A stretch of 64,000 bases of DNA from positions 183,071,588 through 183,135,587 of the forward strand of contig NC_068982.1 of NCBI RefSeq assembly GCF_001194135.2, in the 5' to 3' direction. The notes under the pieces are model-generated. The model saw nothing but the letters and a program-made list of their open reading frames with translations. It was not told the DNA's origin and made no database searches. Positions within the stretch are counted from its first letter, which is position 1, and every line of letters starts with the position of its first letter. The translations under genes were made by a program, and so were the position numbers. Shown here piece after piece: positions 10,397 through 33,760 of the stretch. The stretch comes from Octopus bimaculoides. Its lineage: Eukaryota.

Positions 10397-10435
10397 AGAT
10401 ACACCTCTCATTAATTAATAATTATTGATCACAAT

Positions 10436-10660: not shown

Positions 10661-10837
10661 TCTAATAATGCTGTCGTCACACTGGTTAACCGTTACAGCT
10701 AAATTCTAATGTGTTTTATTTAAATAGTTATTTACTATATATGTCTATATAGTGAGCAGAAATATGAAACGAGTACTTGTCCTTCGGTGGTATACTTGTC
10801 CTTACGCTGCTAACAGATTAACCTGTATGAGCTGAGC

Positions 10838-11270
10838 ATGTCTTTCGCTGGCAGAAGAAGCCAGGCAATGCAAGTCCAAAAGAAACTCATGTTGATCCCT
10901 TTTTTTCAACAGCAAAGGCATCACTTACAGCCACTGGTCTCCTCCTTGCAAGACGGTTCACAAAGAGTGTTTTGTGGAGGTTTGGGGAGAGTTCAAGAAG
11001 AAATTTCGGGTCGGTGGCACCTTTCCTGGACAATGCACCAATTCCTTTCTTGCAATTCCTTTCTGGTAACAAACTACTTGACGGAGATGGGCATCAAAAC
11101 TGTCCCTCACCCTCTCTACAACCCAGACCTTGCTCCCTGTGACTTTTTATTGCTCCTCAAGCTGAAGGAGAACTTCAGGAGCAGTCGTTTTGAAGACATC
11201 AAGATGAAGGAGGATTTCCATAGCGCCATTACGAAGAGGCTTGAGCGCTACTTTGTACTTCTTTGACATG
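10838..11270 (+). mobile_element. Mariner transposase C-terminal remnant
   Basis: Frameshifted DNAP, then LVTNYLTEMGIKTVPHPLYNPDLAPCDF, matching the mariner HPPYSPDLAPxDF motif. Confidence 0.85.
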
Positions 11271-13500
11271 TTTCTCCTGAAAGGGTTTCTAAATTTCTGG
11301 AATGATCTTCGTCTTAAAAGGGTAAAGACACCCTTTGAACATGAATGACCATGGGATTGCACCTAGAAAGTTACCCTCCGAGGCATAAGTCCGAGCAAGG
11401 TTGTTGCCCATGCATATCAGCCTCCTTTCTCCACGCCCCCGATGTCATCCAAAGGAAAGGCAAAGGCCGATACAGCTTGGCACCAGTGACGTCATAACTC
11501 ATTTCTACAGCTGAGTGAACTGGAGCAACGTGAAATAAAGTGTTTTGTTCGAAAACATACGCACAATCCGGTCCGGGAATCGAACTCACTACCACTTGAT
11601 TGTGAGCTCGACGCTCTAAGCACTGAACCATATACTATCAAATTCTATGAAGATGGCCATAATTTAGTAGGAAAGTAATTGTCTCTACCTGATTTCCTGT
11701 TAATCTTTCTGTTGTGTCGACGCCTCCAGGCGAAGAAGTAGGATATCCCAAGACATATAAATAGAGGTAGTCTGACCGTGGTAGGAGTGTTGAGTAGCAG
11801 TCGAGTAGCAGTTGTGTAGCGGTTGAGTAGAGATCATCCGAAGGTGCTAGATAGCAGTAACTTGAGACATAATACTTTCTAACACTTTTCTCTTTATATT
11901 CAGTATCACTGAGTAGTTAACAGCCATGGTTTGCTCACGTTAGGAATTTAATGAAAATATTTGCTAGTTCAAATTTCAAAAGTGGCAAGGTCATCTTCAG
12001 TCTACTATCCGCCATTTTACTCTCGTTCCATAATAATCTTATTCTGTAACAAACCAATAATTTTCATTTTCATAGGGTTGTAGAAACAAAGAAGCTCTAA
12101 AATTTCTTATTTTCAACGATGTTAGCTTAATATATTGACTAAGTGCTTGTTAGCGAAGATGTTGAATGGAATGATCTTGAGACAGTTTGGTTACGAAGCG
12201 ACATTCTCAAGCAAACCCGCAAGCACACAGTTATGCCTATGCGAAACGATATCTATTACAAATAAACTACACCAAACCAGTGGTTTTCAACCTTTCGTCT
12301 CTCGACTGCATCTTTTATGGAATGGTGTTTCACAAACGCTCCTTCATAGGGTTTCGGGGTAGGATTTTAGATTAGGATTTTCGGGTTTACAGCTAGAGTC
12401 GGAAATTTAGAATGAGCATCAAACGATGAAAGCAAATAATAGAAAACGAATGAATTTGTCAATTTATTTTTTCTTTTAACATACAGATATAATATATAAT
12501 GTTTAAAACATAAAAATCCTGAAAAAAAAACATTTGCAAATGAATTAAAAAACAAAAAGGTACGAAAGAAAGGATGTTCATGGCACAACTCAGATATGTA
12601 TTGTGTATTATTGTAAATTTCATATATATATATATATATACTACAGTATTATAGTCATATAACATGAATGAAAAAAATATGCTTTTGCCACTGTGATTAA
12701 GATCAAGAAATGTCGCAGAGGTACAACAATTATAATTTTACTGTTTACACATTTCATGTTGCTTATACAATTTCATTAAGTTAATCAAATTTTGTAAATA
12801 ATTAGATTTATCAACTTAAAACAAGATTTTATAAAAGCTATTTCTCATCTATATATTTGCAATAAACATGTTGTCAGTAAAAATGATATCATTAAATTAG
12901 TATTCTAGTCATGATGTGTGAAGAAAACAATTTACAAAAGATTACAAAATTTTCCCAAGAGTTATATTTTCATTTTATGAGTTAATTAATTATTCAAACT
13001 ATTGCTTTTCTTATACAGTTTCCTTCATTTTGTTTTATGAAGCAATTGCTTGGAAAACTCTACGCTTACGCGCACTCGGGATAAGGTCCACGTGTTGAAA
13101 AGAGAAACCATCTGTTTAAGGGTGTCGCATGTCAGTTATTTAGAAGTTTGATTTTGTTCCCAAATACATATTACAGCCGCTTTGAAATGCATCGCCAATG
13201 ATGTTCTTGAGATTTTAGCTAGTTTCAGGTCGTTCAACATTGGACCCCGCAACTCTGACAGGTTGATCCCATCGGAGTTCAGCTAGTCCCAGCTTCCTTG
13301 CGGCAATAAGCCATGAGTCAATCCTCTTTATGCAAAGTCATCTAAGAAGCTTTCTCCGCAGCTTAAACCGTTTTACTGATTCTGTTTGTTATTCATTGCT
13401 AAAGGAAAAAGTATAAACCAGTTATCTGGCTTATCTGTGAAGTTTTTCTTGGGCAGTGTTTTTGATAAACTTTATAAATCCAATATACTAACAATATTTA

Positions 13501-13737
13501 GGTGACCGGTAATAAAGCCACAGGAAAAAAAGTCATAGTAATAAAGTTACAATTTTGACTAGGAAAAAAAGTCGCAATTTATGGTGGCCGGTAATAGAGT
13601 CACGGGGGAAAAGTCACAATTTATGGGATCTGGACAAAACTCCCCAAGGACAAAACCCCCACGGACAACCCCCCACTCCAACCCCGGACGAAACACTTGT
13701 GACTTTTTTCCTGTGACTTTTTTTTTTACCTGGATTC
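13501..13737. mobile_element. MITE with ggaaaaaaagtcac sub-repeats (MULE-like)
   Basis: Left gccacaggaaaaaaagtca is the reverse complement of right tgacttttttcctgtgac. Internal ggacaa-a/c-cccc units. Confidence 0.6.
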
Positions 13738-14676
13738 AATATTTATGCCGTCCACTCATTCAGTTGTATGATATTTGCAACTCTTAGTCTCCCTCACTCT
13801 TATCTCTTACCCCTTATCTTTCTTTCTGCTGCCTGTTCCTACTACTTTATCTTCTTCAGCAATCACAAATGATTGTTGTTTCACAGAGTAGAAGTTTAAT
13901 TTCTGATGACATAGTATTTTACTGGTACTGACAAAGAATANNNNNNNNNNNNNNNNNNNNNNNNNNNNNNNNNNNNNNNNNNNNNNNNNNNNNNNNNNNN
14001 NNNNNNNNNNNNNNNNNNNNNNNNNNNNNNNNNNNNNNNNNNNNNNNNNNNNNNNNNNNNNNNNNNNNNNNNNNNNNNNNNNNNNNNNNNNNNNNNNNNN
14101 NNNNNNNNNNNNNNNNNNNNNNNNNNNNNNNNNNNNNNNNNNNNNNNNNNNNNNNNNNNNNNNNNNNNNNNNNNNNNNNNNNNNNNNNNNNNNNNNNNNN
14201 NNNNNNNNNNNNNNNNNNNNNNNNNNNNNNNNNNNNNNNNNNNNNNNNNNNNNNNNNNNNNNNNNNNNNNNNNNNNNNNNNNNNNNNNNNNNNNNNNNNN
14301 NNNNNNNNNNNNNNNNNNNNNNNNNNNNNNNNNNNNNNNNNNNNNNNNNNNNNNNNNNNNNNNNNNNNNNNNNNNNNNNNNNNNNNNNNNNNNNNNNNNN
14401 NNNNNNNNNNNNNNNNNNNNNNNNNNNNNNNNNNNNNNNNNNNNNNNNNNNNNNNNNNNNNNNNNNNNNNNNNNNNNNNNNNNNNNNNNNNNNNNNNNNN
14501 NNNNNNNNNNNNNNNNNNNNNNNNNNNNNNNNNNNNAGAAGCAGTAGGGAAGGAGAGGAAACAGTTTTGTATTCCTTTAACATTTTTAAGGATTGTTTCA
14601 ATGAAAAGTAACTTTCCGAATACAAACACATTCTCTCTCTTTCTCTTTGTCTCTCTCTCACTCTTTCTTTCTTTCT

Positions 14677-14724
<48 letters not shown>

Positions 14725-14899
14725 CTCTGCGCAGACAAACCCATTTCCAAATGAATTAAAAAACAAAAAGGTACGATAGAAAGGATGTCCATGGCACAAC
14801 TCAGATATATATTGTATTATATATTATATATATTGTACATTATTATAAATTTCATATATACATTATATATAAATTTCATATATATTAAGTATAAATTGT

Positions 14900-15092
14900 T
14901 TTCAAATTTTGGGATAAGGCCAGCAACTTTAGGAGAGGGATTAAGCTGATTACGTCGACCCCAGTATTTAACTGGTACATATTTTATCGACAGCAAAAGA
15001 ATAAAAGGCAAAATCGATATCGGCAGAATCTCAACACAGAACGTAAAGACAGACAAAATGCCGCTAAGCATGTTATCCGGCGTGCTAGCGAT
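14900..15092 (-). mobile_element. SINE family A copy
   Basis: Reverse-complement match to 3796-4016. Confidence 0.8.
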
Positions 15093-15234
15093 TATATATA
15101 TATATATATAACAGAAACACATATGTACATACATACATACATAACTTAGATAACTTAGATATGTTTCGACCAAAGATTGGTCCAAGCCATGTCTAACTTA
15201 ATAGCACCACCTGATAGGATTAACTAAATCCTTT

Positions 15235-15420
15235 CTAAGTCAAGTTTTGTGGTATCACGGTCCATTCGAGTAGGGAGTTTTTGTTGGGTGAGTTGTATCC
15301 AGGCATAGATGGCTTATCTGGTATTCCTTCAAGAAATTTGTCCAGATCCCGTTTAAAGGTGATGGGATCCTTTAAAGGTGATGGGATCCTTTTCCTCTTT
15401 GATCCTTTTCCTCTTTGATC
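15235..15420 (-). mobile_element. LINE (CR1/L2-like) ORF2 3' remnant
   Basis: PITFKRDLDKFLEGIPDKPSMPGY...NSL, a typical LINE C-terminal motif. Two short internal tandem duplications. Confidence 0.55.
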
Positions 15421-15815
15421 TGCCGGAGCCTCGTGGAGCTTTAGGTGTTTTCGCTCAATAAACACTCACAACGCCCGGTCTGGGAATCGAAACCGCGATC
15501 CTATGACCGCGAGTCCGCTGCCATAACCACTGGGCCATTGCTCCTCCACTAATGCAAGTATCATAGAAAACTGAAAGGTATCCTCAAGCCAGAGCCAGGT
15601 CTCTGGTTTGAAAGTATCATCCTCCTTCCAAACGGCTCATCTCCGAGGCCCTATAACGAGTCATGAGCCCTGCCTTGCCTTCTGACTAAAAGATTTAGAA
15701 AAACATCATCATCATTACCATCATCGTCATCGTTTTCGTCGTCGTCGTCATCATTATCGACAGCAACAACGTGTATTCTGATGTCATCAAAAGAAATCTG
15801 TTCTCTGTTTTGCAG

Positions 15816-15910
15816 TCCTACAAATATTCTTACTCAAATGCCCAAGGTTCAGTGGCGGTTGCCTACCACAAAGTCTGTGTCCAGCTGTGGGATACAGCTG
15901 GTATGGAAAG
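15816..15910 (+). CDS. Rab27-like GTPase exon (beta2-beta3 insertion, G3 box)
   Basis: tttgcag| SYKYSYSNAQGSVAVAYHKVCVQLWDTAGME-R |gtaggt, phase 0 to 2. There are 24 residues before W, more than the ~16 after DF in ordinary Rabs, matching the Rab27-specific insertion. Confidence 0.9.
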
Positions 15911-15989
15911 GTAGGTAGGTAATGGCCGAAATACAGACTTTCTTCTCTGATCAGCAACATAACCAATGGCTCTCTCAGTTGAGTAACCT

Positions 15990-16335
15990 TCTCCACTTGG
16001 ATACTTGGTTATGGTGTTGTTGTTGTTGTTCTCGTTATTGTCTTTGGTGTTTTTATTGTCGTTGTTGTTATAAGAATCGTTGTTGTTATTTTCGTACTTT
16101 TGTTGTTACCGTTCTTACTGGTTTTGTTGTTTTTGTTGTCATTGCTTCTTTGTTGTTGTTGCCGTTGTTATTGTTGTTATTGCTGTTATGCTTGTTAATG
16201 TTCCTCCTGGTGTTGTTATCGTCGCCGTTATTGTTGATGTTAATGGTGTTTGTCAATATTATTGTTGTTGTTGTTGCTGCTGTTGTTGATGTTACAGTTG
16301 TCATTTTTACTGGTATAGCTGTTATTGTTGATGCT
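15990..16335. repeat. Degenerate (TTG)n low-complexity tract
   Basis: Directly visible, in the Rab intron. Confidence 0.85.
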
Positions 16336-17088
16336 AAGACCCATTTCAGCTTTGATCGAACAAACCTACGATCAACTGTATCTCAACCGTGGCCACCCGG
16401 TTCTTTTATTTTCAAACATAATATCTTTAAGAGTTCATTGTCAAATATGTCCTTCCTTTTTGAAATATGTGGCATATGATTTGATGTAGAACTAGGTGCA
16501 ATTTCTAGGAGGACTACCGGCCACATAGAGACTCTTTTTATGGCCGGGTGTTGTCCACGATCATTAATAGAGGCTACACATTGTTCGTATTTTACTAAAA
16601 AAAATATTAACAAATAATACTTACAGCCAGTTATAGATAGATATAACTATAATGATAATGAAATTTAATTATTTAATATTATAATCTGACAATATTAATG
16701 ATGTAAAGTGACAAGTATGCGCTTGAGGTAACGGCTACATTAACACATGCTCTGTAACTTTGCAGTGATCTCTGTAGAAAGCTACACATTAGCCTAGCGA
16801 ATTTAATCATTATTAGCGACGCAGAATTTTGCAGAAGGGCCCAAAAGCTATAATGAATACCTTCAAAATCCAGGATAACAAAATTCAGGAAAGTTCTAAC
16901 GAGAGAGAAATCAATGGTGGGGACATCAAAAGATGTGTGATGAGGAAGATCATCACATTCTCTTTCAATCGATATATGCACAAGTTGTGTTTATATTTAT
17001 ACACACTGCATGTCTTAGTCAATATATATATATATATAAAGAGAGAGAGCGGGGGAGAGATATAGATAGATCGATAGATCGATCGATC

Positions 17089-17146
<58 letters not shown>

Positions 17147-17600
17147 CGGACACATAATACATACATACATACATACATACATACGTACGTGTGTGTGTGT
17201 GTGTATACAGCATGTATAATACTGATTATATTACATCTATCAGTTAGTATATGCTCAGCTTTGAGTGCTTAACCGTCACTCGTTAGCGCATATGACTTGG
17301 TACATTGTACCATGCTTTCACTAATTGTTTCAGATGCGTATCGAGTAGTGAGCAGATATAGATATCCCGTCAGTCATCTCATCCTTTTCCCAGAACATCA
17401 AGGATGTGACAGCTGAGGGAAGAGAGGACAGCACCAACAGTTGACTGGTACTCATTTATAGCTGAATAAACTGGAGCAATATGAAAGGAAGTGCTTTGCT
17501 ATCCTAACCAACAATTGATTCTACGACCTTATAGCCGTGTGTCCACCACTTTAACCACTAAGCTACGTGCTTTCACATTTACACGCACACACACACACAC

Positions 17601-17662
<62 letters not shown>

Positions 17663-18856
17663 GTGTGTGTGTAATCATAATTTTCATCATCAACATAGCC
17701 GTCATCGTCGTCGTCATTCAACGTCCTTTTATCCACACTGGCATGGGTTGGACGATTTGACAAGAACAGAGGAGCCACAGAGCTCCGATAGATTTTATGA
17801 CTGTTTGGCATGGTTCTACTGCTAGATGCCCTTCCTAACGCCAACCACTTAACAGTGTTGCGGGTGCTTTTTAGTGGGTGTTTTTTACGTGGCACCATCG
17901 ACAGTTAGGTCGCCAAGTACCCGCAAGATAAGACAGTGCTCATATTTAATCAATATATTCACACCATATCTCTCAATCGACATGTATTGACTGTATTTAT
18001 GTACTGTAGGAATATCGATCTATTCTATATCAATCCAGTTCAGCTTTTACCGACTGTATGTACTAAGAAGTAGGTTGGTATGTAGGGATATATATAGATA
18101 TATACATACATATATATATATATATATANNNNNNNNNNNNNNNNNNNNNNNNNNNNNNNNNNNNNNNNNNNNNNNNNNNNNNNNNNNNNNNNNNNNNNNN
18201 NNNNNNNNNNNNNNNNNNNNNNNNNNNNNNNNNNNNNNNNNNNNNNNNNNNNNNNNNNNNNNNNNNNNNNNNNNNNNNNNNNNNNNNNNNNNNNNNNNNN
18301 NNNNNNNNNNNNNNNNNNNNNNNNNNNNNNNNNNNNNNNNNNNNNNNNNNNNNNNNNNNNNNNNNNNNNNNNNNNNNNNNNNNNNNNNNNNNNNNNNNNN
18401 NNNNNNNNNNNNNNNNNNNNNNNNNNNNNNNNNNNNNNNNNNNNNNNNNNNNNNNNNNNNNNNNNNNNNNNNNNNNNNNATATATATATATATATATATA
18501 CATATATATACGACGGGCTTCTTTCAGTTTCCGTCTACCAAATCCACTCACAAGGCTTTGGTCGGCCCGAGGCTATAGTAGAAGACACTTGCCCAAGATG
18601 CCACGCAGTGGGACTGAACCCGGGACCATGTGGTTGGTAAGCAAGCTACTTACCACACAGCCACTCCTATATATATATACAGCATGGATAATACTGATTA
18701 TATTACATCTATCAGTTAATATATGCTCAGCTTAGAGTGCTTAACCGTCACTCGTTAGCGCATATGACTTTGTACCTTGTAATTACATGAATATGTATGC
18801 ATATTAATTTATAAAGCTATTCCCCGCCTAATTGTATGACCTTCTCTTTCAATCAG

Positions 18857-19084
18857 GTTCCATTCCTTGACAACATCCTACTTCAGAGATGCAAAAGGAT
18901 TTTTCTTGATGATTGATCTGACCAATGAAAATACTTTCGTAAACGCTTTCGCTTGGTTACAAAAAATGGAAGAATACGGTCCCAGATCTGGCTACGATGT
19001 AATCATTGTTGGCAATAAAATAGATCTTGTAGACTGTCGCAAAATCAGTGCAGAGACTTTACATAAATTTGCTGAAAATCATAG
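18857..19084 (+). CDS. Rab27-like GTPase exon (switch II, G4)
   Basis: ctctttcaatcag| (R)FHSLTTSYFRDAKGFFLMIDLTNENTFVNAFAWLQKMEEYGPRSGYDVIIVGNKIDLVDCRKISAETLHKFAENH |gtttgt, phase 2 to 2. Aligns with Rab27 [23 protein letters not shown]...GNKSD. Confidence 0.93.
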
Positions 19085-20459
19085 GTTTGTTACAAACAAT
19101 CATCTCTTAACTGTCATAAATTTGCTTTCAACACATTCCACCGAAACAGCTATATAGTTCCTGGTATATTAATATACTAATGTAGTTAATGAGCGCGTTG
19201 GTAATATCCTGTACTTAATGAGTATTTTTTATTCATTTATAAACGAACGTGTGTAATTTTTTGTTATATATGGATGTGTGTATATGTGTGTGTCAGCATG
19301 TATATACCTTCATGTGCGTGCTTGCTTAGAACTTGCATATGTGTGCTTGCATGCTTGTGTGTGTGTGTCTGTGTAGGTACGTGTAAGCTATGAATAACAA
19401 CTTAGTCCCATATAATATAATGCATTACAATTTTGAAAGTGATGCGACGCATTGCACAATGAGAGCCCGAGTTATGTAATGCTTGCAGAGTGAGCGACTG
19501 GATAATGAAAACTGATTAGCACAAGATCGTTTCTGTCTCTGACCTACAGTCGTGCTGTATCCTCTCTTTTTGTCTTGACTAACACCACTACAGTGGTTTC
19601 TGTTCTTCGGAGTTGACTGATCTCATCCTTTGTCGCCCAATCACTCCCAGTTCATTCATCACTTGTCTCGTTCCTATTTGTATTGTATCTAAACTCCTAC
19701 ACAAACAATTATGTCAAGACCCTCTTTCGCAAAACGTCAGCCCTCTGGAAATCTCTCTTTGCCAGTGTTTCCCCTCCAGAAGAATATAACTGTATCTGGA
19801 GACCATAGGCAGCCACCTCTTTCAGATCAAACTATTTAACAAATTTCGAACTTGTGCTTTAATAGGACTTTAATTCGTGCCATTACATTCCTGCTATTCG
19901 CATGGTGTCTATTCTCACCTCATCATGTCCTTTCCTCACCAAATGGGGAAGATCTCTTCTCCAGTTTGAGACACTAGTGTCGCTGAAAATAGCTCTAAAA
20001 TGCAATGAATATCTGGTTATATTCAGTGACCTTAGAAACATTAGTTTGTAAATATCGTTTAATATTTCATGAATGCAGCTTTTGGACATATTGTTTGATA
20101 TTTCACGAATACAAGGCGGCGAGCAGGCAGAATTGTTAGGATGCGGAGCAAGATGCTTAGCAGCTTTTCGTTTATCTTTACGTCAAATGTATTTATTTAA
20201 TTCAAATTTTACTTAGTCACATGACTATCTTTACTTATCAAAAACACATTTTAGTGACTTGTATAACTTTTCTTCCAGCGCGTATGTAATTACTCCCCTG
20301 ATATTATTTTCAAAGGGATGCACCTCTACATAATTGATATACTTTTACGTCAAAGGTGTATATCTTTACTTCCTATTAACAATTAACAAATATATTTATA
20401 TTTATTTATGTATTTACCCCGCCCAGACATAGTTATCTTCTCAGATTTCCCCAAATAGG

Positions 20460-20950
20460 TGATAACGTGATCACGTGAGATCTGATTGGGCCTGGGAAGA
20501 ATACATGAAGGATGCTCACGAGACTATCACTGTCAAATACCTGNNNNNNNNNNNNNNNNNNNNNNNNNNNNNNNNNNNNNNNNNNNNNNNNNNNNNNNNN
20601 NNNNNNNNNNNNNNNNNNNNNNNNNNNNNNNNNNNNNNNNNNNNNNNNNNNNNNNNNNNNNNNNNNNNNNNNNAGGATATCCGGGTTTTGTAGGACGTTC
20701 AATCTGCAAAGCTCTAACTGTACTTGGAGTTACTGGTGTAGCAAAGGGGGAAAAAGTGGCGAGGCATGCATTATGGAAGCCGTAGAGAAGGCCATTAGAT
20801 GGCTTTGGAGAAAGAGGGCCGACCAATGGATTATCGCTGCTGGGATCAAATCTTCGCTCAGCTAACTGAGAGGGTCTCATATTGAATAACTCGAAAGCCC
20901 CTGGGACCCTACGAACAGCACTGAGGTTGCATCCGAGAACATTCGTGAGA
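20460..20950 (+). mobile_element. HERO-like REL-endonuclease non-LTR retrotransposon 3' remnant
   Basis: WEEYMKDAHE...KY [gap] GFVGRSICKALTVLGVTG...EAVEKAIRWLWRKRADQW. Fits WE..MEEAHERK..KY...GCRGF.G.SL...EAAEKASRWLW.KR. Confidence 0.75.
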
Positions 20951-21224
20951 TATATCTTGGAACAAACGAACTATCATTTCTCGTTAGACACAGCATTCGC
21001 TTAATTCCTTCCAACTTTTAAAGCTTCCTTTATTTTTGACTTAAGCCCAAGTTTCTGGTGGCTTATTGTCGTCTCATCTTCTCAATGTGTATCTACCACT
21101 TTCTAGGAGGTCTTTACCGAATTGTTGTTGTTAATGTACTTGTGTCCGTGTTGTATTCCAGTTTTCCACTCAATGTGTATCCAGCCCTTTTTTAAGAACT
21201 TTCCATGAACTTTTCTGTCCACAG

Positions 21225-21411
21225 ACTACCATATGTTGAAACCAGTGCCAAAACTGGGATCAACATCGAAGAATCTATCGATATGATGTTACACTTAGCA
21301 ATATTCCGTCATAGATTATCATTCCAAAAGAAAGTAATCAATGAAGAGCCGGTTCCTACAAAACTGTGTAATAGCACTACTACTCGACGAATTAAATGCA
21401 GCTGTATTTAG
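21225..21411 (+). CDS. Rab27-like GTPase terminal exon (G5, prenylation motif)
   Basis: ttttctgtccacag| (R)LPYVETSAKTGINIEESIDMMLHLAIFRHRLSFQKKVINEEPVPTKLCNSTTTRRIKCSCI*. The last three exons total 510 nt and stay in frame. Confidence 0.93.
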
Positions 21412-23912
21412 ATCAAGTGCTGTAGTTAAGTGAAGCTGGTAACAGAACTTGTCAGCATATGTCTTGAGTTTCTCGACATATTCCAGCAATGGTTACAGGT
21501 AATATAGTCACATTTTCGATGTTGTTGTTATTAAGAAAATTTTCAAGCTCCAAACTAAATAATTCTAAAGTAATTTACCAGTGGCAAAGGTTTTCAGCAT
21601 CCTATCTTAACTAACAGGCATATTAAGCTTTTGCCTGCCCATATTATTTTGGTAATTTTGTCTCAAACGTCCGTGCTTGTTTTCAGACGTTTTGTTAGCT
21701 CTTGTTTCATACGCTCTGAGCAATATAAAGCTTCTCATAAGTCTCAAGTTACTCTGTTAGTTGAAAAACATTTGGAATGCGTGTCATATATGATGCATGG
21801 GTGCCAGAGAAATATGTCTTGTGTATTACATGTAATACAGATGGCAGGCAAAGGGTTCAGCAAAAGAAATTTTGTATTCTTTCACACATTCATAGAAGGG
21901 TAGCTTCATTATCCAACCCCACCCGCTTCTATACTCCTTCATGCCTCTGGTATTTAATTCCATCCTCACACTTTCTAAATTCAAGTACCTCCAATGTAGT
22001 TTCTGTTTCCCATCCATTTATGATTAACGAAATAAATAACAGAAATATTCTGGAGGAGTGGAATGTCAATTCACCAAATTCTTCTCCTGTTTGTTTGTGA
22101 TCTTATGTCGTATCACCATTACTATTTTGATTTTTGTCAATTAACTAAAGCATTGTGTTAAACGATTTGGTTTTATCTCTCTAAATTTTCAGCCCAAATC
22201 CTACCCAATAATAACTATATTCAGAAGACTCTTCTTATTCACAATAATACTCCTAATTGAACGAATACTGACTCATAGGATTTTAGATCGAATCTAGTGT
22301 AAGTGCTTCTAACTAATACAAAGCAGTTTAATTAACTTTAGGATGAAGATATACGGATTTTATGGAGAAGTTAACTGAGATTATTATAATCCAGACGATA
22401 AGGAAAATTTTCTCTCAGACACTTAAACTAATTTGATGATCCCCACGGGAGAAGTATTTTGGGATGGTTTTCAGTTGTTGTTGTTGTTGTTGTTGTTTTA
22501 TATCTCCCTGTCAGCTCTGATCGAGGACATATTATGGAAGGATTTTCAACCATTAACTCCTAAAACATTATCTAGTTTGTCCTTCCATTTTTTTTAAAGA
22601 AGGATGATTGTAATCTGAGTAAGATTTCGCTATGGTTTCTACTACTTTACCCACCATATAAACACTTCCAGACTTCCTCGTTTCTTATTACTTTTTTGCA
22701 TGGCTGGGGGGCAGGGAGAATGTAAGGATCTGCAAAGAATCTGACCAAAATAGAGTGGATTGGTGCAATGGAAAGTATTTTGGAATTAGAATGTTACCTT
22801 GGTTATTTCTGAAAATCCTCATCATCACCCCTCACTGCTCTTAGAAGTTCAGCTAACATTATTCAGTGTCTTTTTGTGCTTCTTTCGAGGTGAAGGGTAA
22901 GGTGTTTAAATTATATTCAGTTAATTTATTCCAACTCAAACTTGTGTTTAATGAATTTTAATTTTATATAACAGTACTGATCTTCCACATATCGTAACAT
23001 ATCGAATCGCTGACCTTTTAACCTTATATGGCAACACTGACCTCCAACATTATAGTGCATTGTTGATCTTTTGAGATTATATCGCATCACCCACCTTTCT
23101 CATAATATTTTATCGCTGGCCTTTTATATTATATTTCTAGTGTTCTCGGTTCTCCCAGGCTACGACAACAGTACCGCTTCACAATCACCAACTATTTCAT
23201 CATTCTGGTCATCATCGTTGCTATACCTTATCCTGAGGAGAACTGTGATTAGATACAGCTCCTCAGAATTCAACCTACCTCCGAAGGAACTGGACATCAA
23301 GGGTACAGAACGGGTAACACACATCAATAAAATATACGCAATTATTAGTTCTCCCTCTTGTTTTTCTTCATAAAAACTGTCATTGGCGCTATTTTTTTTT
23401 ATCGTTATGGGTGTCATTTCTATTTACTAAACATTTTTACGATTCACTATTATTATGTTAGCATATATATTTAAATATAATATACATCCATATCTTTGGT
23501 ATTTTAGCCTACTTTCGATGGGGTGAGGTTTTCAGATTATATTCAGATAATTTATTCCAACTCGTGTTTAATGAAGTTTGATTTTTTAATAATATACTGC
23601 AATACATTTTGTATGCTTGTCCACACTAAAATATAATGTTCAGTCACACAATATGTACGTTACGTTATACCTAAATATAACATATGGCTGCACATTAAGT
23701 ACGTTAGCTCACACTTAAATTATAATATGCGGTCATACATCAGTCTATGCGGTAAATACATTTAGAACCAAAATTAGTTGATCTTTAAGAGGCAAATCAC
23801 TCTGATTCGTTACATTAATCTTGTTTGCGCTACAGGTAGATCAAAATGGTACAACCTAACACCGCTGCCGCTGCATAAATTTGTATACTCGTATGTTTGC
23901 CATGTGTATGTG

Positions 23913-23950
<38 letters not shown>

Positions 23951-23960
23951 NNNNNNNNNN

Positions 23961-24005
<45 letters not shown>

Positions 24006-24299
24006 ACTATGCTAATATGCTTGTATATCTGTAACAATGTATGTATGTATGTATCTATGTATGTATGTATACGTGTTTGTGTGTATGTGTGTACTTATGG
24101 ATAGATGGGGAGGGGCACAAGAGGCAGGGTCGACGCCTAGCTGAATTGTTACGAAATTCGCTTCACAGTCATGGGGTGTTGGGTTCATCCGACTCTGTGG
24201 AAACTTGATCACATATCATTTAATGCAGTTTCGTGTCAACCTATGTCTTCAATGTGAAACTGAGGGTCGTAGGTTGGAAGATCGTCTGATGGTTTGATT

Positions 24300-24780
24300 G
24301 TATTTGTAATTCAAACGTCCGTTCTTGTCGTGCAATGTACTACACTAAGTGTCTTTACTGTCCAGCCTGGCACCCAGATGCTTGTGAACACAAGATACGT
24401 AAAGGGTAAGGATTTATAGAAGATTTCTTGCTTCGACCACTCATGGATAACACAATGGAAGAAGACAATTATGAAGGTGTATCTAGTCTGTTTGCCAAAA
24501 AAAAAAGGTCTTTCTTGGAAAATGGTAATGGGCTTCACAAATGATGGAACTCCATGCAATGTTGGGTTGTAAACCCAGTTTTTTAGAAAGCTGGTTAAAT
24601 GTCAACACTGATATAAAAAAAAATGCACTGTGTGCTTCATGAGAATGTATCATGCACAAAGACGCTGTTTTGTGCTCTCTGATTCGTTGTCGGTATGGTG
24701 AGCTTAAATCTCTGAACAAAAGGGCCCAACGTTACTGTGTTAAGAATTAAAGGTTGAGAAAGAGGCACTTTCGTTTCACA
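24300..24780 (+). mobile_element. hAT (Buster/Charlie-type) transposase remnant
   Basis: Frameshifted QMLVNTRYV, EDFLLRPL, GLSWKMVMGFTNDGTP, MHCVLHE. Fits QLLV.VRY, EDFLFC, LSW..CVG.CTDGAP, HC.IHRE. Confidence 0.7.
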
Positions 24781-25143
24781 CAAGAGTGTGATGAATTTCA
24801 AGAGGTAATATCATAGACCGAGTCGGAGTGAGGAAAAATTAAATGAAAGAATTATTTTTCGAGAAATCGTCAGGATAATTAATGCAATTGTCACGGGTAG
24901 TTTTATGATGTTTCGCCGACGATAGCTGGTTATGTTAATGAATGAAAATACGTTTCTTGGCTGCGTGAGGAAGTAACTGAATAACACACGCGAACATTCA
25001 CGAGAAGAGTTTATTGTCGCATATAAAGGCGAACTGTGCTGGTCATTTACAATTAACAACTGCAATAGTTACAGACCGGGAGAGAGATACTGCTCTGGGA
25101 TTACAGAAAGCTAGTAGTATAACATGCGATTTATCCAACATAC

Positions 25144-25240
25144 CTTGAATCAATTGCACTATCATCGTGGCGACGGAGGTTCTTGAACATCTGTCTGAGC
25201 CGTGTGTCTTGGCCGTCTTCCAGAGGGGTTGTCTGGCTGT
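25144..25240 (-). other. Putative first exon of a heat-inducible transcript (lncRNA or small ORF)
   Basis: Runs from the inferred TSS to CAAG|GTATGT. Contains ATGs at 25190 (MFKNLRRHDDSAIDS..) and 25165 (GCCACGATG context). No protein recognised. Confidence 0.45.
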
Positions 25241-25270
25241 GAAAATGCGCGCCGAGCGGGTTTTATAGGG
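25236..25270 (-). promoter_or_regulatory. TATA box plus Inr-like core promoter
   Basis: Minus strand reads CCCTATAAAACCCGCTCGGCGCGCATTTTCACAGCC. TATAAAA is at 25267-25261, and the CA dinucleotides are 27-29 nt downstream. The spacer is CpG-rich. Confidence 0.65.
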
Positions 25271-25283
25271 AATCAGAAGTCAA

Positions 25284-25303
25284 ATTCCAGAATGTTCGAG
25301 AAA
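25284..25303. promoter_or_regulatory. Heat shock element (HSF1 site), 4 perfect inverted nGAAn units
   Basis: aTTCcaGAAtgTTCgaGAAa at 25284-25303, lying -45 to -63 from the inferred minus-strand TSS. Confidence 0.8.
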
Positions 25304-25514
25304 ACCTAGCCCAGACCATCTATTCACTCTAGTTGGTCGGTTAATAGACAGATCACGTGAAACTATGATGGTTTGGTCGTGATGTCTGCCCGCTTTCGAA
25401 TCATCCCTATTCAATCAAATTTACAGATAAACTTTATCACAACCAGTGAAATAGAACTAACCTACCTGAATATAACATTATGATAAATGACTAACATTTT
25501 GTAATTGTGCATTT

Positions 25515-25516
<2 letters not shown>

Positions 25517-25549
<33 letters not shown>

Positions 25550-26030
25550 ACCCATACATTTTACAATCTATATTTCACAGTCTGTCAACAAACACGGTAA
25601 AAAAATTTTTTTGAAAGACCTCTTAAAAGAAATGTAAAGATTTGTTGGGTTATATTGGCTGGAGTACACTGTGCCTAAAACTGGAAACGGAGTGGTCATG
25701 GCAGAAATATCTCTGAACATAGGTCTACTCAATCTAGTGCCTAACAAGTATAACAAAACATTCTATATTATGATGCAGTTACGATCAGCATTGACAAGGG
25801 TGGTAACTCCATTACATCCGATTATCTCCCTTGGCGTATTGTTTCTAGAGTTATTTCCCTTATTCTTTCTGTTTTGCGGGGAATATACTTTATCGTTGTT
25901 ATTTCGTTGATTAGAATAGTGTTTTACATCTTTCAGAGTGTATATGATATTATTGGTTCTATGTTTCATTCCATAACGTTGCATTTCGATTGAATATCTT
26001 CGCGATATTGTTGGCAATATAACAAGATGA
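25517..26030 (-). mobile_element. Probable LINE (L1/Tx1-like) 3' remnant with poly(A) tail
   Basis: A ~31-nt T run at 25517-25547 (poly A on -) follows broken minus-strand reading frames. Family assignment is weak. Confidence 0.35.
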
Positions 26031-26229
26031 GTGAATTTATCGACAATTTGAAGCTTTTCTGGGAGGGATATTTGATTCAGGAAAGTTCGAAAGGCATATC
26101 ATCGAAGTCTGCAAAGTCTTACACGACAATGTGGATTGAACAATGTTAGCAGGTTAACTGCGCCAATTTTACTTTATTTACTTTACAAATTTGTAAGCAC
26201 TCTCAATTGAAAATTACTGTTTCCTCTCT

Positions 26230-26266
<37 letters not shown>

Positions 26267-26740
26267 GTTAGTTTCTTTTTGAATATATCTTTTCGGTTCT
26301 TCAAACATAACTGGTACAGCTATGATCAGAGATGACCAAAGGTCAACAATAATATATACATAGATATATATAACAATAACATAAAGACCAAACACTTTTT
26401 AATTTTCCTCAATTTAATTTATTATCACATCTTTGTATACTTTCTTTTCATGCAAAAAAAAAACAAAAAATTCAAGAGATACAGAAAAGCTGCTCTGATT
26501 GGTCATTTGCAGGGTGACGTTGCAATGGGTACATAACTCTTTAGAGCTGGCAGTAGAGGGCAGCACTCTACTGCTAGCTTTTTTTTTTAACCTTTACAGC
26601 ATCACACCTTTTCACTGATTATAATCTTTTTTTTTTTACTTTTTTCTTTATATTTTCTTTTTAATTTTGTGAAATATTTCAGAATAACAAACAACTTGAG
26701 AGGCTTTGTGTGTGCATGTGTATTTGTGTGTGCATGTATA

Positions 26741-26777
<37 letters not shown>

Positions 26778-27994
26778 ACACGCATACATAATTCTAAATA
26801 CCCCTTTCTATCTATCTGGTCAAGACTACAAATCTAAAATATATATACACAGTTTTTACGTGTGTATATACATTGATTTATGAGTGTGTATGTCTGAGTA
26901 CAAACATACATGTGTGTGTGTCTGTGTGTGTTTGTAAAGGTGAAAGTCTGTGTTTAGGATAAAGTACTCAATACACAAAGAAGAGTAGATATTTTATTAG
27001 AAGTTGAAATTTCTGGATGTGTAGCACTGAGTGTGATGTTACTTATTATTCAAATGATTGAAGTAGGAAAACAGTATGATGATGATATATAAGCAAAAAT
27101 ATTTGCAAACATTGAGATTCTATAGCTGAGGCCAACCTTAAGAAAATGAATCACCCATTCAGTTATAATGCAAATAACACACGGCATTGCCATCTGTTAC
27201 TGTGCAAAAACACATTTTGTTTCCCCATGTTCAGTACCATATGTATAAATCACATACGAACAAGAAAGTTGGTCATTGATAACAATGTTTTAGTATTAAT
27301 GAACATCTTTTCTTATTTATATATCTATATTTCAGGGCATTACAAATTCTTTCTTTAGGAAATAAACAATTTTGCTAGTTGGTATTTGTAAATTACTTGA
27401 TAACATAAATGGTTCCAAGCTTAATCTCTGTTGAAGAATTCTTTAACCATGCTGCTCATTAGTACAACAATGCAATATTACTTCAAATATACAATATATT
27501 ATACACAGTACAATGCTAATATCAAAAAATGCAAAAATTGGAAACTAAATATTTTATGGTTTAATCCTCTTTGTAGTTTAAATCTTCATTCTCTTGTTGC
27601 ACAAACTGTCCTAAACCTTATAAGAAAACTATGTCCTTATAGAACATTTGGTTGAGTTCCAGTTGCACTGCTGCTTCTGTAGTCAGTATAAACAGAAGAA
27701 ACATTTCCAGCATGAACACACAAAATTTTTCTCAATGAAATTTCAGTATCTGCTACTTCAGTGCTATATGTCTTTCTATAGCATTAGTTTATCAAGCTAA
27801 GGATTTACTTGCAGATAAGTGATACAAAAAAGCAATATAGAGCTTACTGAAAATCTCTTTTAAAAAAGATTCTGAATGGATACATTCAGGTACTCAAATA
27901 GATGTCTCGTTCAAATATATCTGGAATTTAAATGAATTTACTCAGTTTTATAATTGTAAAACCGAGTGGTTCATTATAGAACACGCATCCTACG

Positions 27995-28190
27995 ATAATA
28001 ATCCTTTCTACTATAGGCAAAAGGCTTGAAATTTTAGGGAAGGGGGATAATTGATTAACTGGTACTTATTTCATTGACCCCGAAAGGATGGAAGGCAAAG
28101 TTGACTCTGGCAAATTATGAACTCAGATCATAAAGACAGGCAAAAAGCCACTAAACATTTTGCCCAGCATGCTAACAGTTCTGCCAACCC
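27995..28190 (-). mobile_element. SINE family A copy
   Basis: Reverse-complement match to 3796-4016. Confidence 0.8.
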
Positions 28191-28774
28191 TAGGTCCTAT
28201 TATAATAATGATACCAGAAAGTGTGATCTCTGTCTTTTACAGAAAGACAACAATCTATTATAGATTTTGAAATTTGTAACAAAAGATTAAAATCCGTGAA
28301 TTCTTGCAAAGATGCTTCCTTTGATATTCATTGGGGAATTGACAACAACAAACTAGCTAAAATAATTTACTCCCTACATAATGGATTTTCCATATCCTGA
28401 AAGATAGATCATAAAAATATTCATGAACAATATAAATTTATTAACAACAGCCATCACGCTAGCTCATGCGAATTTTATGCATATGACACTGAAGGTATGG
28501 GATATCATATGACGCGACGAAACTATGTGTTCTTGAAATGAAAATTGAATAGATGAATGTGTGACACATTTTGAAATGTTCTTCCTCAGCAACTAATCAA
28601 ATATGTATGTACTGTTGCCAATTCATATTTCAATGCTTCTAATAAAAATACAATGGAAGTGATTCCTTCTCCTTTTCTTCTGGTTTGCTCCTACTCCTAC
28701 AGTTTTTATTTGAAATTACTGAGCACTGTTACTTATACTAATAAGAGATCAAATTTATTTATATATATAGACGC

Positions 28775-29170
28775 AGATGTGACCGTGAGGCAACTAGCTT
28801 GCTTACCAACCACATGGTTCCAGTTTCAGTCCCACTGCGTGGTACCTTGAGCAAGTGTCTTCTACCATAGCCTTGGGCCAACCAAAGCAATGTAAGCGGA
28901 TTTGGTAGACAGAAACTGAAAGAAGCCTGTTGTATATATATATACATATATATATATATATGCGTATATGTTTGTGTGTCTGTGTGTTTGTGTCCCCCAC
29001 CACCATCACTTGACAACCGATGTTGGTGTGTTTACGTCCCTGTAACTTAGCGGTTCAGCAAAAGAGACCGATAGGCTTACAAAGAATAAGTCCTGGGGGT
29101 TGATTTATTCGACTAAAGGCGGTGCTCCAGCATGGCCGCAGTCAAATGACTGAAACAAATAAAAGAATAA
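28775..29170 (+). mobile_element. SINE family B full copy
   Basis: Same head, core, internal (TA)/(TG) tract and tail. Confidence 0.85.
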
Positions 29171-29174
29171 AAGA

Positions 29175-29212
<38 letters not shown>

Positions 29213-30018
29213 CACACACACACACACATGTACATACACATATATTTGTATATACACTTATATACATAAACATATATACATATACTCACACGCACGTATA
29301 TGTATATACATACATATATACCTACACATGCATATATGCGTATATGTATGCCTGTATATGTATATGTGAGTGCTATTTAATGTTGTTACCCTTTAGTTTT
29401 GTTAATAGTTATTTCTTTGATTCTCACCCACTGAAAGCTATTTCGTTCCATTCATTGTTTGCCTTATCAACTTCTTTATTGATTTATTTAATTAATTAGC
29501 ATAATTCATTGATTAATTGTTTATATCAGCATGATTTTAAGATCGTGATTACACTGTGGCCTCTGTACATTTTTCACATAATGAATATTTAAACCGAGTC
29601 AATTGATTAAAATCGTCACAGTGGCTTGTGCTCTTCAGAATATCAAGTACTCCACAAACACCCACCCACACACACACACACATATATATAGACGTGTGTG
29701 TTTGTGTGTGTATGCATATGTATATGTGTGTGTACATGTGTGTGCATGTGTGTGTGTGTGTGTGTACTTTGGGTAAACGATTAGGAGAAAAAGTACTTGA
29801 CAGATGTTAGAATTTTTTTGTTTTGTTTCCCAAAGCTGATGTTTAACTCAGTTGCTGCTCTGAGTTTCTTGCCACATGCAATACTTCAGGTGATAAAGCA
29901 ATCAATGTTTTTTAGTTCTTTTTTTTATCTTTTTTTTTTTTTCAATTTGGGCACCTGAAAGAAGGCATATTAGTGAAACTTCTAAGTAGCAACAGAGTAA
30001 ACCATTTGCTTTGAACAA

Positions 30019-30049
<31 letters not shown>

Positions 30050-30420
30050 TATATGTATATATATGTATATATATACATACATAGATGTGTGTTTAAATAC
30101 ACATGTTCAGATGCACATGGAGAATGACAGAGTGAAATAAATGTATTTTGTGTGTGTACACATACACACAAAAACACACACACATTTATATATGCAGACA
30201 CACTTATACAAACACACACACTAGTGTATATAGGTGGTAGTGTAGAACTATGAAGTTTGTTTTGTTTCTGTTTATCTTTGTTTTTTATTATTTCTGTCTG
30301 AGTGTAGAATGGTACCAGAAACATACGAAAGACAGTTGTGGCAGCCCCTATTGTCAGTCAACTGTTGCCCATATACTGTTTGTCTCTTGACTGAAATGAA
30401 TCTAATCAGAAAACCATCCC

Positions 30421-30454
<34 letters not shown>

Positions 30455-31652
30455 TATTTGTATCTTACAGATTTAATATTTTAGCAGAATAAAAAAAAAA
30501 ATCTCTACTTTGACTAATTTGCAACTTCATCTGAAACTTGGTATTTCAGATGAACCTTCGAATTAGTAAAAATGGAGTTTCTTTACTAAAATATTATTAA
30601 ATCTGTAAGATATCATCATTTGCTCTACAGTAGTTTATCTCATAGAAAATTTTCTGGCTCTTTGGATTTTTTGTCTGTTTTGACCATTGATTCAAGAAGT
30701 TATATATATATATATATATATAAATGTGTGTGTATTGTTTAATACCTATTTATTCTTCCATGTATCTATATCTATCTATCTATCTGTAACATCATACCAC
30801 ACAGCTGAACTATATTCACACAATTTCTCTCAGGTTTAAGATACTCAAATCTGTAAACCTAACTAACTTGCCTCAACTATAACATTAATTTATAAAATAG
30901 TTGTATTAAAGATGTGTGATGAGTAGTGGATTAATACCTCTTTGTTGCACTGTCCAGTCAGTGGAGAGACACATAACCAGAAGGAAGATTGTGTAGTGAA
31001 TGGTCAGTTTGAAAAGTTACATGTTGGGGAGAGGGTTGTATGGACAATAGTTGTTGTTGTTGTTGTTGTTGTTTAGCACCAGCTCTGCCCAAATCCATCA
31101 ATGATCGGATACATTCCAAAAGTGACCATTCAGTCATTTTATATATCAGGTATTAGATTACCTAAATGTCCATTATTTAAGAGGGTAGGGTCTGGTTGAA
31201 GGAGATTTAGCTGCTTTTCTAGCAGGTCGAGTAATTTCATTGTGGCTCCTTCATAGGGTCCAGACAGTCGGGATTTAGAGGAAAAGGCTCTTGTCTTTTG
31301 CAGGGAGTGGCTGTAAAGTAAATGTTTGGGCATGCTCTTGGAAGTATCGCAGAAATGGTCCAGCAGTAACACTGTTAAATGGCACAATGAACAACAACGG
31401 AGGACGAAACCTAATTAGTGACCCCGTTTATTTTATTATTTAGGGTTCTAATTACCGAGAATTGAACAGTTTGTCAGTATATACTATAGCTGCATGCCTA
31501 CAGCTAACTGACATGGTAGTCACTTGTCTATAATTGCAGATCATTATCTCACCACAGAATAGATACTTTGGTGAAGAATGGAGTTTCAATTAGAGACAAG
31601 ATCTTTATCTCTCTACACACTGGAATACTGGAGTTATCATCATTGTTACAAT

Positions 31653-31700
<48 letters not shown>

Positions 31701-32289
31701 CACTCATGCACACACATAAATATATATATATTAATGGAGCTTGATCAGAATTTCTGACAATGAGTAACGGGTTTTCAGTTGTTCACTCAACTGAATTTCC
31801 ACGTTCCCTGAATTAGCATGTAAGTGGCTGAATATCCCATGGTCACATTTATCTCAAAAGTGATTCTCCAGCATAATCAGCATGATATGGTGTGTGTGTG
31901 TGACAAGGTTGGATCTTTGAATTACTGATACAGACCATCCCAATTTCACTCACAAGGCACAGATCAATCCGAGATGCTTGCCCAAGATACCACGCAGTAG
32001 GATCAAACCCTGGACCTTGTAATTGGGAAGCAATATACATATACTCCCACACACATATGTATGTATCTTTCACTCTCTCTCTTTCTATATGTGTGTGTGT
32101 GTGTGTGTGTGTGTAAGTATGTATATATATATGTATTTTTCATTTTAGTCACTTAGTCCTCTCCAGACCCTCTTGATCCCTTGATCTCTGTTGTCAACAG
32201 AACTACAACTACCCTCTTCAGTCAAATTCTCTGTTTGCTGATTTTGAGAGAGGTAGCCCTGCATCTTCACAGACCTGCAAGATCCACCT

Positions 32290-32325
<36 letters not shown>

Positions 32326-32535
32326 CACATGTACACACTCATGTACACATACATATAATACACATATATATATTTGTGTGTGTGTGTGTGTGTGTGTAGG
32401 ATGTTGGCACCATGTTGCTTTTAACAGAATAGGTGACAGAGGAATAGATTGCATGTTATACATGAGTGTCACATTGTGAAAGATAAAAACCTGTGCCTAG
32501 AAGAGAGAGTATATGATTGTGTGAGCACATGTGTA

Positions 32536-32617
<82 letters not shown>

Positions 32618-32714
32618 TGTGTGCATGCACATGCATGTACATATGCATGTATAAGTGTATGTATCTTTTTGTGTATGCTTTAAGATACATCTTAAATCTA
32701 TTTATCCTGTGGTT

Positions 32715-33005
32715 CTATACTTGGTCTTTCACGGAAGCAATCTTAGTTTTTCTCGTTGGGGATGCCAAGCGTGATCGAACCCACTCCAATGCATGCATCA
32801 GTCGTTTGATATGCCGAGTGTCATGTACTACCCGCTGGACATCATTATCTGTCATGGACAACAAGCGTTCCATTGAAGAGAATCCCATCTTGATGAGATG
32901 TTCACCATACATTGGCAGACCAATGGAGATCAAAAAATCTCTCAATGAGGATATTTTCAGGTCACATGATGATAGGCAGGCTTTGGCCAATGATTCACTG
33001 GTCAT
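32715..33005 (-). CDS. SASH1: SASH1-like terminal exon, SAM2
   Basis: tttttttattacag| MTSESLAKAC...ISSLRDFLISIGLPMYGEHLIKMGFSSMERLLSM...RHIKRLMHALEW...KDQV*. Compare SASH1 SSVSDWLISIGLPMY. The ten exons total 2964 nt, or 988 codons. Confidence 0.93.
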   Translation of the reverse strand: MTSESLAKACLSSCDLKISSLRDFLISIGLPMYGEHLIKMGFSSMERLLSMTDNDVQRVVHDTRHIKRLMHALEWVRSRLASPTRKTKIASVKDQV

Positions 33006-33129: not shown

Positions 33130-33760
33130 ACTTTAATCCTTTAACATTTAAATTAGCCATTTTAGCCAAAACATCCTACCTGTTTTATTTTCAAACTGTC
33201 CAAATCCAGCCTCTCACATCTACCATACAATGTCATTCTAATAGTGAACAGGAGTGGCTGTGTGGTAAGTAGCTTGCTTACCAACCACATGGTTCCGGGT
33301 TCATTCCCACTGCGTGGCACCTTGGGCAAGTGTCTTCTACTATAGCTTCGGGCCGACCAAAGCCTTGTGAGTGGATTTGGTAGACGGAAATTGAAAGAAG
33401 CCCGTCATATATATGTATATATATATATATGTATGTGCGTGTTTATGTTTGTGTGTCTGTGTTTGTCGCCTCACTATCGCTTGACAACCGATGCTGGTGT
33501 GTTTACGTCCCCGCAACTTAGCGGTTCAGCAAAAGAAACCGATAGAATAAGTACTAGGCTTACAAAGAATAAGTCCTGGGGTTGATTTACTCGACTAAAG
33601 GCGGTGCCCCAGTATGGCTGCAGTCAAATGACTGTAACAAGTAAAAGAGTAAAAGAGTAACTGAAACCTCAAAGCTATGAGATAATATCTGATTAATTCA
33701 AATCAATATGAATAAATAAGCATTACATTTGACAGAGTAATCTGTATGCTAAAGAGTTGG
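33130..33760 (+). mobile_element. piggyBac-like MITE interrupted by a SINE
   Basis: MITE 5' half at 33130-33248 and 3' half at 33661-33760, with a full tRNA-head SINE between. Confidence 0.65.
33250..33660 (+). mobile_element. SINE family B full copy
   Basis: ggagtggctgtgtggtaagtagcttgcttaccaaccacatggttccgggttca...gtaaaagagtaaaagagtaa. Confidence 0.9.

Follow-up and report, generated by a model that had tools for sequence, protein, structure and literature searches.

An orphan heat-shock-type promoter candidate between convergent Rab27-like and SASH-like genes of Octopus bimaculoides

On the minus strand of a 64-kb stretch of Octopus bimaculoides DNA (contig NC_068982.1; hereafter the window), we found a segment with the layout of a heat-shock promoter and no recognisable coding gene downstream of it. 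The reading that we prefer, tentatively and at a little short of even confidence, is a functional, Octopus-restricted Pol II promoter of the HSF type that would make a short RNA, either non-coding or with a micro-ORF. The site belongs to a known kind of element, and the promoter may have originated as a solo LTR.

The core of the promoter is a perfect 4-unit HSE (TTCtcGAAcaTTCtgGAA, 25285-25302, minus strand), which occupies about -47 to -64 relative to the predicted transcription start. It reads tTTCtcGAAcaTTCtgGAAt on the minus strand (TTCCAGAATGTTCGAGAA on the plus strand) and consists of four perfect, contiguous and alternately oriented nGAAn units, where classical heat-shock gene promoters have three or more; it was the sole match in the 64 kb, even with one mismatch permitted. 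A TATA box (TATAAAA, 25267-25261, minus strand) is positioned 17 nt downstream of the HSE, and the CA dinucleotides at 25241/25240 and 25239/25238 lie 27 and 29 nt beyond the first T of the TATA box. The A residues of these dinucleotides, within TTTTCACAGCC, provide the predicted start (25238-25240, minus strand). A palindromic E-box (TCACGTGA, 25353-25360) is present ~115 nt upstream of the predicted start. The original prediction had described this set of motifs and likened it to the hsp70 promoter; the HSE, the TATA box and the E-box were all found where it had placed them, the 17-nt spacing proved exact, the start candidates are present as sequence motifs, and the proximal HSE, TATA box and predicted start do share one strand. 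In the Drosophila hsp70-type promoter, too, there are at least three perfect contiguous units, with the HSE within ~20 nt of the TATA box and the start ~30 nt after it, and the HSE core GAATGTTCG resembles the fly HSE1. Unlike the fly promoter, the octopus site is accompanied by no chaperone or other recognisable coding sequence.

The promoter is located in an 11-kb intergenic gap. Because the coding ends of a Rab27-like gene (plus strand) and a SASH-like gene (minus strand) flank the site, at distances of 3.8 kb and 7.4 kb, we placed it between the 3' ends of two convergent genes. Exons of the Rab27-like gene were identified at 10077-10241, 15816-15911, 18855-19088 and 21220-21408 (plus strand, coding end at 21408), and the assembled protein showed 98% identity to an O. 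bimaculoides UniRef entry, 95% to 'Rab-27A-like' of O. sinensis and 74% to 'Rab-27B' of Argonauta hians. For residues 56-90 of the O. sinensis protein, no exon was recovered from the gene (10077-21408); it is probably hidden in the N gap at ~13.9-14.5 kb of the window. The O. bimaculoides UniRef Rab model (P0002), named 'SOCS box domain-containing protein', begins in a spurious ORF at 15919. The SASH-like gene is a multi-exon gene on the minus strand (32718-56607, with exons from ~56.6 kb to 32.7 kb and the coding end at ~32718) for a protein with an SH3 domain and a pair of SAM domains. Among named proteins, the best relatives were SASH3-like, one from a snail and one from a fish, and no octopus orthologue was returned from the protein collection.

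Two other features of the intergenic gap were observed. An ~85-bp direct repeat occurs at 22895-22979 and 23521-23599, with ~620 bp between the copies, in a highly conserved stretch after the Rab27 stop codon that is likely 3' UTR; each copy bears ATTAAA and AATAAA motifs on the minus strand. On the other side of the promoter, the stretch 26200-32600 is nearly CpG-free (observed/expected 0-0.3). It starts directly downstream of the SASH-like coding end, stops ~1 kb short of the HSE promoter and may represent a long methylated 3' UTR or gene body.

Further HSE-like sequences were found in the neighbourhood. Two 3-unit elements with one mismatch are situated at 25175-25187, inside the presumptive transcribed segment, and at 24992-25004, just past its AATAAA signal; a distal perfect 3-unit HSE lies at 26076-26088, ~840 nt upstream of the predicted start. 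Another perfect 3-unit HSE (GAACTTTCCTGAA, 16884-16896) is located within a Rab27 intron. The 13-mers at 16884 and 26076 are identical, and we rejected the idea that they are parts of a shared repeat because they have no flanking homology. It is conceivable, but in our judgement very improbable, that the 4-unit HSE acts as an HSF-bound distal enhancer of the Rab27-like or the SASH-like gene, in which case the TATA box and start would be incidental or would give rise to enhancer RNA only. The orientation independence of HSEs, the few kilobases to either coding end and the additional perfect elements at 26076 and 16884 (the latter kept in O. sinensis) are consistent with an enhancer, whereas the exact spacing of HSE, TATA box and start favours a promoter, as do the donor and poly(A) signal that share their strand; Rab27 and SASH genes are, moreover, not known to be heat-inducible.

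Downstream of the predicted start is a putative first exon or 5' segment of 97 nt (25144-25240, minus strand) that contains 5 CpG and ends in AAG before a 5' splice-site-like GTATGT (25138-25143, minus strand, donor G at 25143), just as had been described for a ~97-nt CpG-containing segment ending in AAG/GTATGT. The donor scored 8.95 bits and, at +96, is the only site of at least 7 bits within 740 nt after the predicted start; donors scoring at least as well occur at 0.375 per kb, and both the scores and this density come from a weight matrix. Acceptor scoring downstream of the donor gave two sites (22703 and 20491), which is chance density, and a weak acceptor is present near 25058. The first ATG (25190) opens a micro-ORF (25131-25190, minus strand) that, if unspliced, encodes MFKNLRRHDDSAIDSRYVG followed by a stop (19 codons); the part before the donor encodes MFKNLRRHDDSAIDS and comprises 15 codons plus 2 nt, in phase 2. 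The start context is weak, with C at -3 and T at +4.

The first poly(A) signal on the minus strand, AATAAA at 25010-25015, is 223 nt past the predicted start and 128 nt past the donor. It is followed after ~20 nt by a GT-rich element (CGCGTGTGTTATT, 24980-24992, minus strand), in the canonical layout of a poly(A) site. The micro-ORF from ATG 25190, the AATAAA with its GT-rich element and the LTR-like ends dealt with below are additions to the original prediction. Because the AATAAA and GT-rich element lie so soon after the donor, an RNA of ~160-250 nt is no less likely than a long antisense transcript. Such an RNA would most likely be non-coding, since the only ORF from the first ATG has 15-19 codons and a poor start context. 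The putative RNA folded no better than shuffled sequences (z = +1.9).

We then estimated how often such an arrangement is expected by chance. Under a first-order Markov model, the expectation for a perfect 4-unit HSE is 0.011 per window, or ~480 per 2.7 Gb. TATAAAA occurs at a frequency of ~2e-4 per strand position; therefore, the probability of a correctly oriented TATA box 10-40 nt from an HSE is ~0.012, and roughly six HSE+TATA pairs would arise by chance in a 2.7-Gb genome. The E-box motif was found in 2 copies in the window versus 0.59 expected and is not significant on its own. The density of 3-unit HSEs with one mismatch is 0.49 per kb, and two of them sit within 310 bp at the promoter.

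The promoter also coincides with the densest CpG cluster of the window. Among 544 intervals of 800 bp, the interval 24601-25400 had the highest CpG count (37), and an island-like block at 24663-25397 (37 CpG in 735 bp, about -160 to +575 of the predicted start) showed a CpG observed/expected ratio of 1.0-1.3, compared to 0.50 for the whole window. CpG density is not specific to promoters, as SINE-rich stretches also give CpG-rich intervals. A SINE-like repeat family with at least 10 copies, some of them in CpG-rich intervals, was recognised by a recurring translation (...LPNPLTRLWSARGYSRRHLPKVP.SGTEPGTMWLVSKLLTTQP...); examples are at 5211-5426, 18538-18645, 28762-29031, 33165-33404, 49397-49921, 57521-57854 and 61003-61409.

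These figures bear on the reading, which we regard as unlikely, that the site is a non-functional coincidence in a CpG-rich patch or the decayed relic of a promoter whose gene was lost. Consistent with it are the numbers of perfect HSEs and HSE+TATA pairs expected by chance, the lack of excess conservation relative to O. sinensis and the lack of a gene downstream; moreover, the donor, the CpG block and the extra HSEs were noticed post hoc. On the other hand, multiplying the probabilities of the HSE, the correctly spaced and oriented TATA box, the top-ranked CpG block, the donor at +96 and the clustered near-HSEs gives a joint expectation far smaller than one per genome, a product that overstates the significance because the features were chosen after the fact. 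The CpG block, donor, extra near-HSEs and AATAAA layout had not been used in locating the site. A recently orphaned promoter would also be expected to leave a recognisable pseudogene of one of the classical HSP families, and none was seen. Because a rare HSE coincides with the densest CpG cluster, the sole good donor and two near-HSEs, the full set of motifs is unlikely to have come together by accident, even allowing for post-hoc selection.

No gene that the promoter could serve was recognised. Stop-free stretches of the minus strand between 25144 and 1, 28 aa or longer (7.6 kaa, joined by XX for the search), contained no Pfam family at E<=0.1, and none was detected on either strand in 25145-32717, up to the SASH-like gene. 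Searches by tblastn with HSP70, the HSP90 N-domain, HSPB1, DNAJB1, ubiquitin and HSPE1 (Hsp10) returned only noise from the window (E>=0.4) and nothing at E<=1 from the gap-free O. sinensis locus (L001), where Rab27 was the only called protein-coding gene in ~30 kb downstream of the HSE. The Pfam and tblastn results bear out, for the window, the earlier claim that no HSP gene follows the promoter. When the 15-codon ORF was joined in phase to each AG further downstream, the extensions were all featureless or repeat-derived. Protein collections of 1.8-5.8 billion sequences were searched with ORFs of the promoter region: ten ORFs taken from the two strands of 24.8-25.4 kb and concatenated, so as to catch ORFs annotated on transcript contigs or in other copies, had no matches, and a 43-aa frame had no match among representative proteins, a result that is uninformative because a perfect 16-residue match would reach only E ~18. 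As far as sequence can show, the promoter is truly orphan.

The same searches weigh on the notion that the 97-nt segment is an unannotated first exon (coding or 5' UTR) of a protein-coding gene whose first intron would enclose the Rab27-like gene and whose remaining exons would be either very short or >25 kb downstream, beyond the window edge. There is a good phase-2 donor after the 15-codon ORF, the window contains 2450 N, and cephalopod introns can be very long. We nevertheless give such a gene only a slight chance: over 25 kb, no AG is followed by an in-frame continuation with a recognisable domain, the gap-free O. sinensis locus shows no other called gene or HSP similarity over the corresponding ~30 kb, the start context is weak, and conservation with Argonauta in this interval is confined to Rab27 exons. 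The absence of a match in the protein collections points in the same direction, although 16 residues are too few for a match to be significant there.

Known RNA genes were not recognised either. Rfam gave no hit at the gathering threshold in the window, HSR-omega models included, and only TG-repeat noise at E<=1 in 18000-26000. Scans for tRNAs, bacterial promoters or terminators and hairpins yielded nothing relevant, with no miRNA-like hairpin downstream, and TRF detected only microsatellites in 15000-26500, with no long tandem-repeat array downstream. Drosophila hsr-omega (93D) is an HSE-driven, heat-inducible lncRNA gene with an intron; its exon 1 contains a very small ORF, and no conserved protein is encoded. 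The octopus site shares with it the HSE, a tiny ORF in the putative exon 1, a donor and the lack of a conserved protein, and the 15-codon ORF followed by a donor is an hsr-omega-like, if not specific, feature. It differs from hsr-omega in having neither a tandem-repeat array nor an Rfam match and in its early poly(A) signal, from which a short RNA is predicted. The hsr-omega-like lncRNA that had been proposed is not indicated by the sequence, there being no array, Rfam match or notable RNA structure.

To place the promoter in evolutionary context, we compared it with the loci of O. sinensis and Argonauta. The HSE (L001 30404-30421), TATAAAA and the 26-nt spacer between TATA box and start are identical in O. 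sinensis, and the 65-bp core from HSE to start shows 2 differences. GTATGT and AATAAA are kept, as is the CACGTG core of the E-box, the 5' flanking T of which is changed to C. The 97-nt segment has two small indels and several substitutions in its 5' part. In the micro-ORF, the ATG is kept and there are two replacements (D10N and R16K) and one synonymous change, so its retention says nothing either way. Of the additional HSEs, the one at 25175-25187 has the same letters in O. sinensis and that in the Rab27 intron is conserved (L001 22886-22898), whereas the one at 24992-25004 is degraded and the distal one at 26076-26088 is not perfect. The retention of every element in O. sinensis was counted in favour of the promoter.

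Identity to O. sinensis was 89% across 25144-25360, compared to 92% for the local background and the whole interval, and thus gives no sign of purifying selection; the 65-bp core ranked only in the top 9-12% of windows for identity. CpG retention was alike inside and outside the CpG island. With a background identity of 92%, the two species are too close for footprinting to be informative. In Argonauta, only the Rab27 exons and SINE-like repeats could be aligned to the window, and the 25-kb Rab27B locus contained no 3- or 4-unit HSE and no match to exon 1 within 10 kb of Rab27B. In the cephalopod alignment that the original prediction had called for, the HSE, TATA box and GTATGT are kept only in the congener, at a neutral level, and nothing matches near Argonauta Rab27B. 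Because the Argonauta locus is without a counterpart, the element is either young (Octopus lineage) or relocated, and an ancient conserved gene appears unlikely.

Two length differences from O. sinensis were found nearby. The window contains a 357-bp segment (24198-24554) that O. sinensis lacks; there is no second copy of it in the sampled sequence, and an imperfect 16-nt direct repeat (CATGgggTGTTGGGTT / CATGcaaTGTTGGGTT) marks its two ends. Conversely, O. sinensis carries a specific insertion of ~635 bp with a poly(A/T) run (L001 30590-31224, corresponding to window ~25469), ~9 nt inside the 5' end of the LTR candidate described next; this insertion is probably a retroposon.

The promoter may be part of a transposable element. 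Candidate boundaries of a 569-bp solo LTR were identified at 24909-25477 (minus strand), with TGTT...AACA termini that have the 6-bp duplicate TTATGA on either side (24903-24908 and 25478-25483). Within them, the HSE and TATA box (25302-25261), start (~25238), AATAAA (25015) and GT-rich element (24992-24980) follow the order U3-R-U5. The site could accordingly be read as the solo LTR of a low-copy LTR retrotransposon, left by recombination between two LTRs, with U3 containing the E-box, HSE and TATA box, R extending from the start to the AATAAA site and U5 being GT-rich; the HSE would then be the element's own stress-responsive enhancer, and the transcript would be a short R-U5 RNA or read-through. 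The mechanism would be shared with the preferred reading, and we assessed the solo LTR separately because it predicts many genomic copies.

We consider the solo LTR unlikely, on a par with the coincidence or relic. In its favour, the termini and duplication exactly bracket the promoter and poly(A) elements in the right order, 5/6 duplication bases are kept on each side in O. sinensis, canonical HSEs have been proven in LTR promoters of Macrostomum (PMC12801592) and ONSEN (PMC13602373), and absence near Argonauta Rab27B is expected for a lineage-specific insertion. However, in a random-core control 7.3% of random positions gave equally good termini and duplication, which makes the boundary evidence weak. 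A 926-bp block (24555-25480) had no second copy in 126 kb (the window, L001 and L002), in which the SINE families of the window recur often; there is no PBS or PPT adjoining the ends and no gag/pol remnant on either side; and the CpG-rich block overruns the proposed 3' end (24909) by ~250 bp. A terminal-inverted-repeat transposon was also considered and rejected, because the flanking inverted repeats are only of low complexity. At 25516-25552, ~280 nt upstream of the predicted start, there is a 36-nt homopolymer run (T on the plus and A on the minus strand) that could derive from the tail of an older retroposed element.

For the preferred reading, a functional HSF-type promoter, we propose the following course of events. 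The motifs, their geometry and rarity, the CpG context and the lack of a coding gene are observed; from them we infer HSF binding, the start, the transcript ends and heat inducibility. Upon proteotoxic stress, HSF trimers would occupy the perfect 4-unit HSE (about -47 to -64), and the bound HSF would recruit or release Pol II, with transcription starting near 25238-25240 as directed by the TATA box. The resulting RNA would be short and encode no conserved protein. Unspliced, it would be ~245 nt long and cleaved after the AATAAA at 25015; if the donor at 25143 were joined to the weak acceptor near 25058, a ~160-nt RNA would result.

A longer transcript would have other consequences. As previously suggested, a minus-strand transcript would be directed at the 3' end of the Rab27-like gene (coding end at 21408). 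It is therefore imaginable, at a probability as slight as that of the protein-coding first exon, that the site is the start of a cephalopod-specific heat-inducible lncRNA or micropeptide gene that bypasses the early poly(A) signal via the 25143 donor, runs antisense across the Rab27-like 3' UTR and down-regulates or re-routes Rab27 during thermal stress. Because AATAAA sits 128 nt past the donor, antisense regulation is possible only with this bypass. If true, it would constitute a stress-triggered natural antisense switch on a secretory-vesicle GTPase.

HSE-bearing promoters without classical HSP genes have been described in other organisms. In C. elegans, HSF-1-bound HSE promoters drive ncRNA, pseudogene and repeat transcripts, and the HSF-1-dependent non-coding genes include unclassified ncRNAs, the pseudogene dct-10 and miR-239 (PMC6765114). 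Like these, the octopus site has an HSE-bearing promoter without a protein-coding product and is a candidate direct target of HSF; the C. elegans genes were defined by RNA-seq and HSF-1 ChIP, whereas the octopus site is described from sequence and has no miRNA-like hairpin downstream. In Ty3/Mdg4 families of the flatworm Macrostomum lignano, a spiralian, canonical HSEs in LTR promoters have been proven (PMC12801592), and Arabidopsis ONSEN has an HSE-bearing LTR promoter (PMC13602373). The octopus site resembles these LTRs in the HSE, TATA box and poly(A) signal within a few hundred bp, the candidate TG...CA bounds and the short duplication; it differs from them in lacking internal retrotransposon sequence, PBS and PPT, and its boundaries have a false-positive rate of 7%. 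HSEs are also carried by Helitrons in Caenorhabditis (PMC6927752). These are, like the octopus HSE, lineage-specific, lie outside classical HSP genes and could confer local heat responsiveness; unlike them, the octopus HSE is single-copy in 126 kb and has its own TATA box, predicted start and poly(A) signal.

If inert, or if a solo LTR, the site would be an ordinary by-product of genome turnover. If active, it would be the first HSF-driven non-coding transcription unit described for any cephalopod, and its ~120 bp would provide a compact natural heat-inducible promoter, a potential inducible driver for octopus transgenesis. To our knowledge, the acquisition of new targets by the heat-shock regulon has been documented in nematodes, flatworms and plants and not in molluscs. 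The octopus promoter bears on how such targets may be gained, either de novo or via LTRs.
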